This document shows positions 6,722 through 64,000 of a DNA stretch of 64,000 nt, in pieces. Source of the stretch: Octopus bimaculoides. Lineage: Eukaryota. The notes below the pieces were generated by a model, which saw nothing but the letters and a program-made list of their open reading frames with translations, did no database searches and was not told where the DNA came from. A program made the translations under genes and the position numbers. The stretch lies in the NCBI RefSeq assembly GCF_001194135.2, contig NC_068993.1, positions 5,344,723-5,408,722 of the forward strand, read 5' to 3'. Every line of letters starts with the position of its first letter. Within the stretch, counting starts at the first letter, position 1.

Positions 6722-9397
6722 ATGTGCAATAATATGTCTGTTAAGTTCATCTCCTTTTCCCTCATTTTCTGGGGCCTACAGTTGTTTGCTTCAGCATTAC
6801 GTGAGTTAAATTTTCATGTTTTAGAAGAAACCGCCGAAGGCACATATGTTGGAAATGTTGCCAAAGCTTTTACTCGCCCCACGCATGGTGACTACTTGTT
6901 CAAATTTCTAACGCAAGGGAACCAATACACAAACCTTTTCCATATTGGGACAAACTCAGGTATTATAACTACTGCTGTACCGATTGATCGAGAACATATC
7001 TGTGATAATGATATTGGGGGTCACACCTGTATTGTAACTGTGAGTGTCGCCGTACAGTCTTCATCCGATCCACGTTTTCTTGATATGATGAATATAAAAA
7101 TAAATATCGATGACATAAATGATAATGCCCCATTATTTGATAAAGATGAAATTGCTCTTGAAATCAGTGAATCAACTCCTGCTAATACGAAATTCCCAAT
7201 TGAGGACGCCTATGACTTAGATACAGGAATCGACAATTCCATTAAATACTATATACTTTTAAACGATCGAGATAAGTTTACATTACTTCAAGAGAATGGC
7301 TTTTTAGATGGCTTGCAGTTGAAACAGAAATTAGACCATGAAGAACAGGACTTTTACCAGTTAGTTATTGTAGCCAAAGATAATGGCACTCCTCAAAGAA
7401 GTGGTAATGTAGTTGTAAATATAACTGTACTTGACGCTAATGATAATGCCCCTAAGTTTGATAAAAAATCTTATACTGTTTATATACATGAAAATCGCTC
7501 CATATTATCGACAATTCTTACATTACACGCTGAAGACTTAGATTCAGGTCCAAATGGCCAAGTAGGATATAAACTTCATCACAGAACATCTTCGAAAATT
7601 AAAGAAATTTTTGATGTTAATCAAACAACAGGAGAAATTCATCTAATTAGCAGAGTTGATTATGAAGATAGACCTAGATATTCCTTCAATGTCATAGCTT
7701 ATGATCACGGTGCTATCGTCCAGTCATCAACTGCTTCAGTCAATGTCTATGTAGTTGATGTGAATGATAATAAACCTGAAATAATAATCAATCTCCTGTC
7801 ACTTGGTTATGCGGCTAATGTGTCTGAGTCTGCATCCAAGGGTAAGTTTATTGCCCACGTATCAATTAACGATCGAGATCAAGACCAAAATGGAAATGTC
7901 AGTTGTTCTGTCAATGATCACCATTTCAGTCTGCAGATATTTTCTATTAAAACCTATAAAGTTGTTGTTGCAAAACCTCTAGACTTTGAAAAGACCTCCG
8001 TTCACAATGTGAGCATCCGATGTCATGACCATGGTACCCCACAGCTTCACAGCGAGAAAAGTTTTTTAGTCATTGTCGCAGATAAAAATGACAATCCACC
8101 AGTATTTGAACAAACTTTGATCAAAACCCCAATTACAGAGAATAATAATTTTCATGATTATGTAACGAAAGTCACTGCCAAGGATAACGATACTGGAATC
8201 AATTCAGAGATACATTACGAACTTCATCACGATGCTCACTCTTGGTTTAACATTGACCATCGGACTGGTGTTATAACTGCGAATAAACAATTTGATAGAG
8301 AACAAAATGCTGAGATTAAATTCAGAGTTTTAGCAATAGATTCTGGTAGTCCTCCTCTTACAGGAACTGCCACTGTTCATTTAAATATTCTAGATATTAA
8401 TGATGAAGCACCCCAGTTCAAAAGAGGGTATTACAAATTTCACGTGAAGGAAGACCAAGAACCATTTACGTTTATTGGGAGAGTTGATGCTCAAGATTTA
8501 GATCATGGAGAAAATGGTCGGATTAGGTATTGGATTTCAAAGAACTATGAAGCTCCTCAACTTTTTATGGTCACTGATGGTGTTTTAAAGACTAAAGCCA
8601 GATTAAGCCGCATGAAAGGTCAGAGATATGACTTTCTTGTTGTTGCCGCTGACCATGGCAAAAAACCATTGAGTTCCTCAACAAATGTCACTGTAATTGT
8701 TGATGACGTCAATGATAACTACCCGTATATTATTTACCCATCCGATACCAACAATACCATTTCAGTGATTTACGATATGACTCCAGTTGACCGACCTATT
8801 TCACGAGTGATAGCTCTAGATGATGATGAGGGGGAAAATGCAATGTTATCCTATTTCCTCAAAAGTACCCCTGAAACAGCTGGTCTTTTCAGAATTAACC
8901 ATACTTCTGGGGAAATAATGCTTATTAAAGACAGTGATATAAGAATATTCAGCAAATCCTATAAATTACCAATAGTTGTTAAAGACCATGGGAAGCCACC
9001 AAAAAGTACATCTGCTATTCTAATAGTAATGATGATTTTGAGCAACAGTACAGAGCTTCCTTATGGAAATGGTACTCCCGATGGCGAAAGAAATTTGACA
9101 ATAGTCATTGTCCTTGCTGCTGTGACAGTTGTCCTAGCCACATGCATAGTCATTACAATATGTATAATTAAAAAAGTAGACCAAAATCGGCGCCGCTATC
9201 CTGCAAAGATGCATGAAGATGCTCGACGCAAGTCTGACAGTTCTCCAGATTCGGACCGTCAAAAACACAAAAAGGAGGTCAGCTTTTCCCTTGATGGAGC
9301 AGATCCAACGAGTAAAGGTTCTGCAAATTCACTGGCCAGTAATACGACAGTCAAGAATCCTGGGGCATTCTTTGCTCCAGACCTACCATCTCTTCAA
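6722..9397 (+). CDS. PCDH: Protocadherin, coding exon 1: signal peptide, 7 cadherin repeats (delta1-like count), TM helix, proximal cytoplasmic tail
   Basis: 892 open codons. Linkers DINDNAPLF, DANDNAPKF, DVNDNKPEI, DKNDNPPVF, DINDEAPQF, DVNDNYPYI; DRE/DHE/DYE/DFE and AxDxGxP motifs; C-X8-C in EC1 (7001-7030); TM LTIVIVLAAVTVVLATCIVITICII (9095-9169); strong donor CAA|GTAAGT after 9397, phase 0. Symbol is family-level only. Confidence 0.97.
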
Positions 9398-11399
9398 GTA
9401 AGTTTATATCAACACACTCATACATACAGAAATACATACAGAAACACATGTTTTTCAATTTATGAATCAAGTGTATATTTTCGTTTCTTTTCTATAACCT
9501 AACCCTTATATATTTACTGACATGATTATACTAAACAACATATAATTTTTGTTAAAAAAAAATTAAATTTATCACATATTAAGTTAGTGAAAAATATATC
9601 GCCAACGATTTATATGAAAACCTTTTCTTTCTCACCTTATTTAGCATGCATGAGAGCTCTTGGCTATATTTTGATTGCATCTGATGAAAATACCTGGGAG
9701 TTTCCTTAGAAAATGTGCTTTGATTTGTAAATTAAAAAGAAAATTTATATATATATATATATATATATATATATACACACACATACATAAATACATACAT
9801 ATATATATGTGTGTCTACATATATATTATATATATACATATATGTGTATGTATTCGCGTATGTATGTGTATGTATATGTATGTATATCTTGTAACAACAG
9901 TGAAATTTTATAAATTTATTAAAAAGAGATTTGAATAGACTTTTAATAAAGCTATCCCTTCTTTAAGCTTTAGAGTTAATATAAATTCCCTAAAATATCA
10001 ATAACAGGAATGTAAAATAAATTTATCAGAAAAAGATGAGCAAATTTAGCAAGTTGAAATTTTAAATTATTATTAAGACATATAATACATACAGGACACA
10101 CACACACACACACACACACACATCCATCTATATGAATACTGCATACATGCGCATGTGTGTGTATGTGTGTGCGGGTATGTGTTGGTACATGCATATTTAT
10201 GATATAGACTTACATCAAATAATTTTATGACGTGCATGTATTCATACCGATATATATATATATATATATATATATATAGAGAGAGAGAGAGAGAGAGAGA
10301 GAGAGAGAGGGAGAGAGAGAGAGGGAGAGAGAGAGAGGGAGAGATACATGTATATATATGCATATAGATATATATATATATATATATACATATATATATA
10401 TGTATACATATATATATATATACATATGTGTGTGTGTGTGTGTGTGTTTGTGCATGTATGTATATATGTTTGTATACATATTTAAGTAAATATACATACC
10501 CATGCACATGAATACACTCACAGAGGATGCGTACATATATAAAGCGAGCGGAATGAAAGTTTATCAAATCCAATAAACTACATGTGTGCGTGCATGTGTG
10601 TGTGTGTGTGTGTGTGTGTGTACATATAACTTTTATCATAAATGAGCTTGAATCAGATCGAATGCATCACCTTGAACACCAACACCACACCATACATCAT
10701 TACCATTCCATGTAGTAAGAGTGGAGCCTTTTGGAAAAAATTATACCTTCCCAACAGATTCTTACCTTTGTTCTTAGTCCAAGATCTTTTGTTAGTTTTG
10801 CATTATCTTCTTCTTTGGTTCCTGCCAACTTTTAGCAATCATTTCTGCCCTTTACTCTCTTCTCCATATTATATAGTGTTTGTCTTCCTATGGTACCATT
10901 ACTTCACTGTTAGTTCAGATAGACACATCACATTCTTTCTAATTCTGGTACAAGGCCATCAATTTTGATGGTTGGGAAGTTGATTACCTTGATCCCAGTG
11001 CTCAACAGGTATTTATTTTAGATACATCATGTTAATAACTTTTCTTATATAATGAGAAAGTTTTCCTCATCAACAAAGTCAAATATTCTAAGTTACTTTC
11101 AATTTTCCATTTTTTTTTTTTTTTTTCGTTTTTGACTTCTGTGATAGTTTTCAAAATATTTCTTCAATGTGGAGTCTATGGCAGCTTTAAGAGGTATCTT
11201 CTCCTGAAATATTTGAATAATACGTAAAAAAAAAAATTCACCCCAAATAAAAGTTTCTAACTCTAATTCAGAGATTGGAACATCTCAGAGACTGGACCAG
11301 GAGTTTCAACAGTTCTAAATACTACTACTTAATTTTGAGCATTCATTAGAATATATAATGAGTAATAGCTTTTTAAAGGTTTCATTAAAGTCTGAACAG

Positions 11400-62812: not shown

Positions 62813-64000
62813 TTAAACTGTGGGCAGGTAATGAACTCTGTCTAGAGTAGCATTTATTTGGGGGATCAGGGAGTTTTTTTTTTTGTTTTTTTTTTTCATT
62901 TTCACAATTGATGCTAAAATTCGTTAAATGTTAGTCGGTTTAAGTTGCAATCATTTAACATTTTAGATTCTCAAAGGACATTAAAATTGTTTAGAACAAG
63001 CAATTTTTATTGTCAGAATATTTAAAAGAAATTTAAACTATAACACACAAAAAAAATGAAAACAGAAAATTAAATTAACTTTAAAATTAACCCTATAATG
63101 CAAAATAAATATACAAATTGTTTTCAAATCCAATATTAAAAAAAAAGTGAAAATAAAATGTAATTATAATTCAAATTTTCTATTTTACATCATTTAGCAT
63201 TACTGAATTTCTAAGAATTAAAATATATATTTATAGATGTATTGATTAAAATATAGTTACTGTTAATACTCACAAAACATCTAAATTCTTGTGTATTATA
63301 GGGTTAAGTTTTCCATGTCATATAATATCATTGCTGTGTTATGTTTGGTTCAGTACCTCAGGCAATCATGCATTTTCTTGATATATTTTGAAAATACTTC
63401 ACAAATAAACTTAAGAAGATTACAATTGTAAAATACAAACGATGAGACATTATGCAATTATATTCAATTAAAAGATAAAAAAACAGAATATTCTATAAAC
63501 AGTATTCATGAACTGTTTTATGATATAAGTAAATGTTGAAGATTTGAATCAAATTTTTAACCAGCAATGTTATTGGTTTATAAAGAATGTTACATAAATA
63601 TGGATATAAAATGTATAACATTATATACATATGCATTTATAATGTTTAATGTATAAATATGGGTATACAATGTCCTTTGAGGATTAATTAAAATGTGCAA
63701 AAAAGTGTGCAAAAAATTCAATATTGTTTCATTTGTGCCTTATATAAACATATATGTATATATATATGTGTACTAAGCACCTATGTATATATGTATACAT
63801 ATTTATATACATATATGTATATATATATATATGCATATGAATATATGCATAAATATATATATGTGTATGCGTGAATATATATACATATATCCATACATAG
63901 ATGTATATATATACAGATGCACATATATATATATATACATATATATATACATATATATACGTATATATATACATATATATATACATATATATATATATAT

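Follow-up and report, generated by a model that had tools for sequence, protein, structure and literature searches.

A non-clustered, delta-like protocadherin gene of Octopus bimaculoides very probably joins one ectodomain exon to several alternative cytoplasmic tails

Introduction

Does a protocadherin gene of Octopus bimaculoides lend its cytoplasmic exons to several ectodomains, in the manner of the vertebrate Pcdh-alpha and Pcdh-gamma clusters, or does a single ectodomain draw on several cytoplasmic tails? The question is raised by a stretch of 64,000 nucleotides (nt) of contig NC_068993.1 (positions 5,344,723 to 5,408,722 of the forward strand), here called the window, in whose own numbering all positions are given. 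One giant exon of this stretch encodes a cadherin ectodomain, and the exons for its cytoplasmic sequence lie many kilobases (kb) away. The vertebrate clusters likewise place the ectodomain, the membrane anchor and a proximal cytoplasmic stub in one giant exon, with long introns leading to small tail exons (PMC7339444), and a preliminary description of the window, made from the sequence alone, accordingly saw in it a vertebrate variable/constant-like layout. If true, a shared-constant-exon system in an octopus would be a striking second invention of a vertebrate mechanism of neuronal identity. The evidence says no. We find instead that the locus is, very probably, a non-clustered, delta-like protocadherin gene in which one ectodomain exon is spliced to several alternative cytoplasmic tails.

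Results

The window holds the 5' part of one protocadherin gene

A six-frame stop-to-stop scan of the window for frames of at least 90 codons returned exons 1, 2 and 3 of this gene as the only coding frames (Table 1); the remaining long open frames lie over simple-sequence repeats. Exon 1 sits inside an open frame of 944 codons. At the roughly 31% G+C of the window, an estimated 7% of random codons would be stops, and a frame of that length is therefore beyond chance. The junctions among exons 1, 2 and 3 all fall between codons (phase 0) at canonical splice sites. The three-exon, 1203-residue product first proposed from the sequence proved right: the concatenated translation is identical to RefSeq XP_014774903.1, an independent match on a 65-Mb chromosome-scale O. 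bimaculoides record. The exon ends read in the window also bear out the proposed phase-0 junctions and introns of about 18.6 and 33.9 kb (18,601 nt from exon 1 to exon 2 when the microexon described below is skipped, and 33,878 nt from exon 2 to exon 3). The span first given for the gene, 6722-62827, is sound for the exons, while its end coordinate lies 15 nt beyond the stop codon. The window covers the 5' two thirds of the gene, which runs on past the window end: annotation gives it 105 kb in O. bimaculoides and 128.7 kb in Octopus sinensis, and the distance from the ATG to the end of the window is 57 kb.

An Octopus vulgaris protein, QBA31152.1 (1202 residues), matches the three-exon product at 99% identity and 100% coverage and is continuous over both junctions. 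Fifty-three O. vulgaris protocadherins, four of them seven-repeat proteins, have been published from a survey of neural RNA-seq and entered in GenBank; QBA31152.1 probably belongs to this set and is transcript-derived (the accession was not found in the text of the supplement). The annotated start of the O. bimaculoides protein, MCNNMSVKF, lies at 6722, and the Argonauta and cuttlefish orthologues begin at the equivalent of its second methionine (MS[IVL]...). Judging from this alignment, translation may start at Met5 (MSVKF, window 6734) instead of at 6722.

The product of exon 1 comprises a signal peptide, seven cadherin repeats, a transmembrane helix and 76 residues of juxtamembrane cytoplasmic sequence. 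Pfam Cadherin matches it at E=3e-101 over seven stretches, six DxNDxxPxF linkers separate the repeats, and a single hydrophobic segment of 25 residues (residues 792-816; window 9095-9169) forms the transmembrane helix. At least six tandem cadherin repeats with a single transmembrane helix, and ectodomain and anchor together in one giant exon, mark this product as a protocadherin. The catenin-binding cytoplasmic domain of classical cadherins has no Pfam match in exon 1 or in any tail isoform (E<=10). RefSeq names the protein by similarity "protocadherin gamma-A3 / protocadherin-11 X-linked", and one cluster member, from Acanthosepion pharaonis, is named "PCDHD1". One-to-one counterparts of the gene are present in O. 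sinensis, O. vulgaris, Argonauta hians (87% identity) and cuttlefish (75% identity).

Isoforms on record differ in the tail

To see where variation falls, we compared six O. bimaculoides and seven O. sinensis isoform proteins (numbering reaches X8 in each species) along with the 90% cluster of the protein (15 listed of 22 members, from three Octopus species). All 19 protein records, from the three Octopus species, Argonauta and cuttlefish, have the same ectodomain exon in its orthologous form, with the ending ...P[DE]LPSLQ. Their isoform differences are confined to the tail, and in O. bimaculoides and O. sinensis they appear only after residue 892. The variable/constant-like reading is not supported here, as every isoform on record varies the tail on the same ectodomain exon.

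In O. bimaculoides, isoform X1 joins exons 1, 2 and 3. Isoform X6 joins exon 1 directly to exon 3 to give 1038 residues, which is the in-frame skipping of exon 2 that had been predicted from the phase-0 junctions. X5 places five residues, PPETW, between exons 1 and 3, and X3, X7 and X8 carry a 47-residue exon (YKTLLHLAKMEDTYSENSGETGASDSGRGGSEEDVQLNRTPYQNSKS) and short alternative ends in place of exon 3. Exon 2 is found in X1 and X3 and is missing from X5 to X8. Exon 3 is terminal in O. bimaculoides X1, X5 and X6, in O. sinensis X4 and in O. vulgaris QBA31152.1. The microexon reads PPETW in O. bimaculoides X5 and X7 and PPENW in O. sinensis X1 and X4 to X7. In O. sinensis, O. vulgaris, Argonauta and cuttlefish, the 47-residue exon runs into a long tail ending ...QKYILKDVIV, referred to below as the YKTLL...KDVIV tail.

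Neither tblastn nor a search for exact six-frame words detects the exons YKTLL..., AAHLQRLL..., GKGIPRETL... and DLKGTH...KDVIV in the readable window. Because they are absent there, and because the gene measures 105 kb against 57 kb from the ATG to the window end, we place the YKTLL exon and those that follow it most probably downstream of 64000, with exon 3 as an internal alternative last exon; this order is deduced and not seen. Exon 3 would presumably be used through an alternative, intronic polyadenylation site after it. Several AATAAA and ATTAAA motifs follow its stop codon, although such motifs are not diagnostic in AT-rich DNA.

The YKTLL...KDVIV tail (proteins P0122, P0002 and P0137) contains the strings SDSGRGGSEED and RRVPNLRTF. 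These may resemble CM2 of the delta-protocadherins and the RRVTF motif of CM3, respectively.

The tails are private to this gene

A shared constant region would look different. Ectodomain exons further upstream, each with its own promoter, would take the microexon, exon 2 or exon 3 as their next exon, and the locus would be a convergent analogue of the Pcdh-alpha and Pcdh-gamma clusters. The phases would permit such splicing, since the donor of exon 1 and the acceptor of every tail exon are phase 0; just 6.7 kb upstream of exon 1 is visible in the window, and the gene listings reach just 10 kb beyond the gene ends. However, the ectodomain is the same in 19 of 19 protein records, which come from five species or assemblies. 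The initial observation that only one ectodomain exon is visible holds, in that the 64-kb window contains no second cadherin-coding sequence. The O. bimaculoides and O. sinensis annotations show no other gene inside the gene span or within 10 kb on either side, and no second cadherin open reading frame lies within 10 kb upstream of the ectodomain exon of the cuttlefish orthologue.

The tails also speak against sharing. Of 140 stored cadherins, only the orthologues of this gene have the YKTLL...KDVIV tail, and the sole relative of exon 3 lies at the orthologous locus (see below). The closest paralogue examined, P0017 (45% identity), has a first exon of 871 codons and, 1.6 kb downstream, its own unrelated tail exon, in a gene that spans 12 kb. 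We tested four of the five features that define a clustered locus and found none of them: there are no tandem ectodomain exons in the window or within 10 kb upstream of the cuttlefish orthologue, no different ectodomains with an identical tail and no tail homologous to PF15974 (Cadherin_tail), and the repeats number seven instead of six. Published work on cephalopods points the same way, stating that, unlike vertebrates, they do not join a variety of first exons to common final exons and that their protocadherins diversified through duplication of full genes (Albertin et al. 2022, PMC9068888). A shared constant region is therefore already largely refuted, and we regard it as highly unlikely here.

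The layout was also considered, and rejected, as a case of convergence with vertebrates, since a large ectodomain exon is a family-wide protocadherin trait. Such an exon is reportedly a hallmark of protocadherin genes generally, a claim made in the title of Wu and Maniatis 2000, as cited in PMC7339444. Because a giant ectodomain exon with small distal tail exons is a general protocadherin hallmark, the arrangement seen here is not a sign of convergence.

The gene resembles delta-protocadherins in its logic and repeat number

Vertebrate delta-protocadherins are grouped as delta1 (PCDH1, PCDH7, PCDH9 and PCDH11), delta0 (PCDH20) and delta2 (PCDH8, PCDH10, PCDH17, PCDH18 and PCDH19). Their isoforms have a common ectodomain and differ in the cytoplasmic domain through alternative splicing, with seven repeats in delta1 and delta0 members and six in delta2 members (PMC7339444). 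The octopus gene is like them in that one gene gives one ectodomain, with the seven repeats of delta1 and delta0, and in its large first exon, its small, widely spaced cytoplasmic exons and its tail-only isoforms. It is unlike them in that its tails belong to no Pfam protocadherin cytoplasmic family. Indeed, at E<=10 no tail variant matches any Pfam family, Cadherin_tail and the protocadherin cytoplasmic families included, whereas PF15974 does appear among the precomputed domains of the vertebrate homologues found. The YKTLL...KDVIV tail matches solved structures at chance level only.

Compared with the Pcdh-alpha and Pcdh-gamma clusters, the octopus locus has a single ectodomain exon for its tails, seven and not six repeats, no PF15974, and variation that lies in the tail. 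Its ectodomain shows roughly the same similarity to gamma protocadherins as to the rest; the best solved-structure matches are protocadherin ectodomains, clustered and delta alike, with no clear preference. "Delta-like" thus describes the logic and the repeat number of this gene and not a proven orthology, and membership in the delta group is not established.

Seven-repeat protocadherins of O. vulgaris have been described as delta1-like and probably ancestral, and CM1 to CM3 were reported absent from O. vulgaris protocadherins (Styfhals et al., PMC6339937). QBA31152.1, which probably belongs to their set, bears the exon-3 tail and not the YKTLL tail, and this might matter for the latter result. 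Within O. bimaculoides, the gene belongs to the same family as the expanded protocadherins of chromosome 14, which are also multi-exonic with each gene having its own exons (PMC9068888), and, like P0017, whose chromosome record has the same length (65,066,837 bp), it combines one big exon with small tail sequence. Unlike the expanded cephalopod protocadherins, it is one-to-one across Octopus, Argonauta and cuttlefish (75-99% ectodomain identity), belongs to no lineage-specific tandem array of near-identical genes, has no annotated neighbour within 10 kb, spans about 105 kb compared with 12 kb for P0017, and comes in many more tail isoforms.

The microexon and exon 3 are conserved in a decapodiform

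The microexon pattern occurs once in the window, where chance would give 0 matches. In a cuttlefish-like locus the same element (PPENW) lies 6.7 kb downstream of the ectodomain exon as CCCCCTGAGAACTGG, preceded by AG and followed by GT (L002 19448-19462). PPETW may resemble the start of the vertebrate gamma constant region (PPNTDW); Pfam Cadherin_tail has no match here.

Exon 3 encodes a conserved, predicted helix of about 50 residues (residues 13-66; window 62408-62569), then sequence predicted to be disordered, then a conserved C-terminal motif, TTTKLTPASASVQP. AlphaFold2, run on the single exon-3 sequence, predicts one long helix over residues 13-66, with a predicted local distance difference test score (pLDDT) above 90 in the core, and disorder elsewhere. 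An exhaustive HMMER scan of 1.84 billion representative proteins with the exon-3 peptide returned exactly one relative (E=7e-18), a 108-residue open reading frame on a 140-kb, cuttlefish-like ENA contig. This frame lies about 44 kb downstream of an orthologous 903-residue ectodomain open reading frame, on the same strand. The cuttlefish-like homologue (L003 9866-10327) has a good acceptor (ttacag/GGC), ends in a stop codon and keeps the C-terminal TTTKLTPASASVQP motif. Over a block of 52 codons, the octopus and cuttlefish-like sequences have 27 identical codons, 20 synonymous and 5 non-synonymous differences, and 37 consecutive residues are identical (HAELQQLATLTKQLSKEFSEFKRLQQLYEAVMLKAEF). 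This codon pattern indicates clear purifying selection on the helix block between octopus and decapodiform, and the comparison as a whole indicates that the microexon and exon 3 are real, old and conserved in the decapodiform. With no Pfam match, the exon-3 helix may be an undescribed cytoplasmic motif.

These data bear on a second alternative, that exon 3 and perhaps exon 2 are part of another gene, nested or further downstream, and that the exon 1-2-3 product is a chimera or read-through artefact. The Argonauta and cuttlefish proteins carry YKTLL...KDVIV and not exon 3, exon 3 has no Pfam family, and a prokaryote-style gene caller returned the cuttlefish homologue as a free-standing frame of 108 residues. 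On the other hand, exon 3 offers no start codon earlier than residue 48 and has a good acceptor at its start in both octopus and cuttlefish; its strand is kept, and its distance from the ectodomain exon is similar (53 kb in octopus and about 44 kb in the decapodiform). The exon 1-2-3 join is also present in O. bimaculoides RefSeq, in O. sinensis RefSeq and in the probably transcript-derived QBA31152.1, and we hold out very little prospect for a separate gene.

A third possibility is that the exon-2 and exon-3 isoforms are low-level splicing noise and that YKTLL...KDVIV is the sole functional tail. That tail is the one found in the Argonauta protein and in cuttlefish P0003 and P0137 (Logan contigs of 3.5 and 6.1 kb, taken as transcript assemblies), and exon 2 is of low complexity and has no homologue in the sampled cuttlefish-like locus. 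Noise of this kind sits poorly with the exon-3 helix block, given its ratio of synonymous to non-synonymous changes, its run of identical residues and the high confidence of the predicted helix, and the deposited O. vulgaris QBA31152.1, presumably from the neural RNA-seq survey, is the exon 1-2-3 form. Splicing noise is thus improbable for the two exons together, while for exon 2 alone it remains a live explanation. The C-terminal two thirds of exon 2 is low-complexity sequence rich in Thr, Asn and Ser, presumably disordered, and exon 2 has no Pfam match. Homologues of exon 2 and of YKTLL were not found in the sampled 40 kb of the 140-kb cuttlefish-like contig.

Bolder ideas can be set beside the preferred reading of one ectodomain exon with several tails. 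One, to which we give scant credence, is that ectodomain exons more than 10 kb upstream of the annotated gene start are spliced to 18105, 27999 or 62372, which would make the locus a small convergent variable/constant unit overlooked by annotation pipelines. A milder one is that the exon-3 helix may be a cephalopod-specific protocadherin motif for signalling or oligomerisation.

Assembly gaps and repeats in the window

The window contains 11 runs of N, compared with six listed earlier (Table 1). None of the 11 overlaps an exon, the closest ending 643 nt upstream of the exon-3 acceptor. Since all gaps within the gene are intronic, continuity of the reading frame across them is not at issue; they could hide further small exons. 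At 1831-2258, a 219-bp unit is present as two 100% identical copies flanking the 10-N gap at 2040-2049, which looks like an assembly duplication at the gap edge and not a biological repeat.

About 600 nt upstream of exon 2, an open frame of 92 codons (27130-27405, + strand; ...TGNETWVHHYEPESKRQSMEWCH...) resembles what we take to be a degenerate mariner-type transposase fragment, with no Pfam match at E<=0.01. In the second large intron, a 125-bp stretch (37038-37160, - strand) matches a site 3 kb upstream of the paralogue P0017 (L001 6857-6979) at 88% identity; an interspersed repeat is the probable explanation. Simple repeats abound, (TCA)n, (ATT)n, (ATA)n, (TA)n and (CA/TG)n among them, and on both strands their tracts yield long spurious frames, none of them coding, in which His, Ser, Asp or Ile is frequent. 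Rfam and tRNA scans of the window gave no match.

Table 1. Exons, introns, assembly gaps and simple repeats, in window coordinates (a slash marks the splice junction)
Feature	Position	Strand	Description
Exon 1, coding part	6722-9397	+	892 codons; ATG start; donor CAA/gtaagt; open frame
Intron, exon 1 to microexon	9398-18104	+	8,707 nt; no N gap
Microexon PPETW	18105-18119	+	15 nt; phase 0 on both sides; acceptor tcag/CCC; donor TGG/gtaaga
Intron, microexon to exon 2	18120-27998	+	9,879 nt; N gaps 21091-21245 and 24750-24862
Exon 2	27999-28493	+	165 codons; phase-0 cassette; acceptor ctgccag/CGG; donor AAA/gtatgc
Intron, exon 2 to exon 3	28494-62371	+	33,878 nt; seven N gaps, about 2.1 kb in sum; no coding match in its readable part
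N gaps in the intron from exon 2 to exon 3	33251-33260, 40917-41845, 48515-48710, 49335-49683, 54493-55004, 55322-55331, 61636-61728		
Exon 3, coding part	62372-62809	+	146 codons; acceptor cttgcag/GCC; stop TGA 62810-62812
N runs beyond the six listed earlier	2040-2049, 2852-3078, 54493-55004, 55322-55331, 61636-61728		
Simple-repeat tracts	3539-4205, 5275-5672, 10076-10666, 13090-13228, 17886-18010, 25425-25738, 45244-45341, 63741-64000		

Discussion

In the arrangement that we favour, one giant promoter-proximal exon would set adhesive specificity, providing the signal peptide, the seven repeats, the anchor and the juxtamembrane stub. Ending in phase 0, this exon could be joined to any of several phase-0 cytoplasmic exons scattered across tens of kilobases, namely the 15-nt microexon, exon 2 with its 165 codons, exon 3 as a terminal exon and the further exons that build YKTLL...KDVIV. 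Inclusion or skipping of cassettes, combined with alternative last exons, would then place different intracellular domains on the same ectodomain, so that diversity would arise at the signalling end and not at the recognition end. Vertebrate non-clustered (delta) protocadherins follow this logic, and the alpha/gamma clusters follow the reverse. The different tails, such as the exon-3 helix and the YKTLL tail, would presumably recruit different intracellular partners, and the RefSeq isoforms presumably reflect real neural transcripts.

Several observations weigh against this account of the gene. The gene listings reach no further than 10 kb beyond the annotated ends. The position of the YKTLL exon relative to exon 3 is one that we infer, and the exon could in principle fall in an assembly gap. 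The RefSeq isoforms are Gnomon annotation models, with one probably transcript-derived O. vulgaris sequence beside them. The exon-3 scan returned no self-hit, the representative of the gene's 50% cluster evidently lacking exon 3, and for that reason the scan could miss other carriers that stand behind tail-less representatives. Finally, Pfam detects no delta cytoplasmic motif, and solved structures of delta protocadherins match the ectodomain no better than those of clustered ones.

Earlier work has already recorded the gene, its isoforms and the fact that cephalopods lack shared constant exons, and the locus is in this respect an ordinary, known feature. The little that is new is descriptive: the microexon is conserved, and so, strongly, is an alternative tail with a helix. 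The gene offers a clean mollusc example of the architecture of a large exon with distal tails and of delta-like tail switching, and studies of protocadherin signalling in cephalopods could take the PPETW/PPENW microexon and the helix of exon 3 as a guide.

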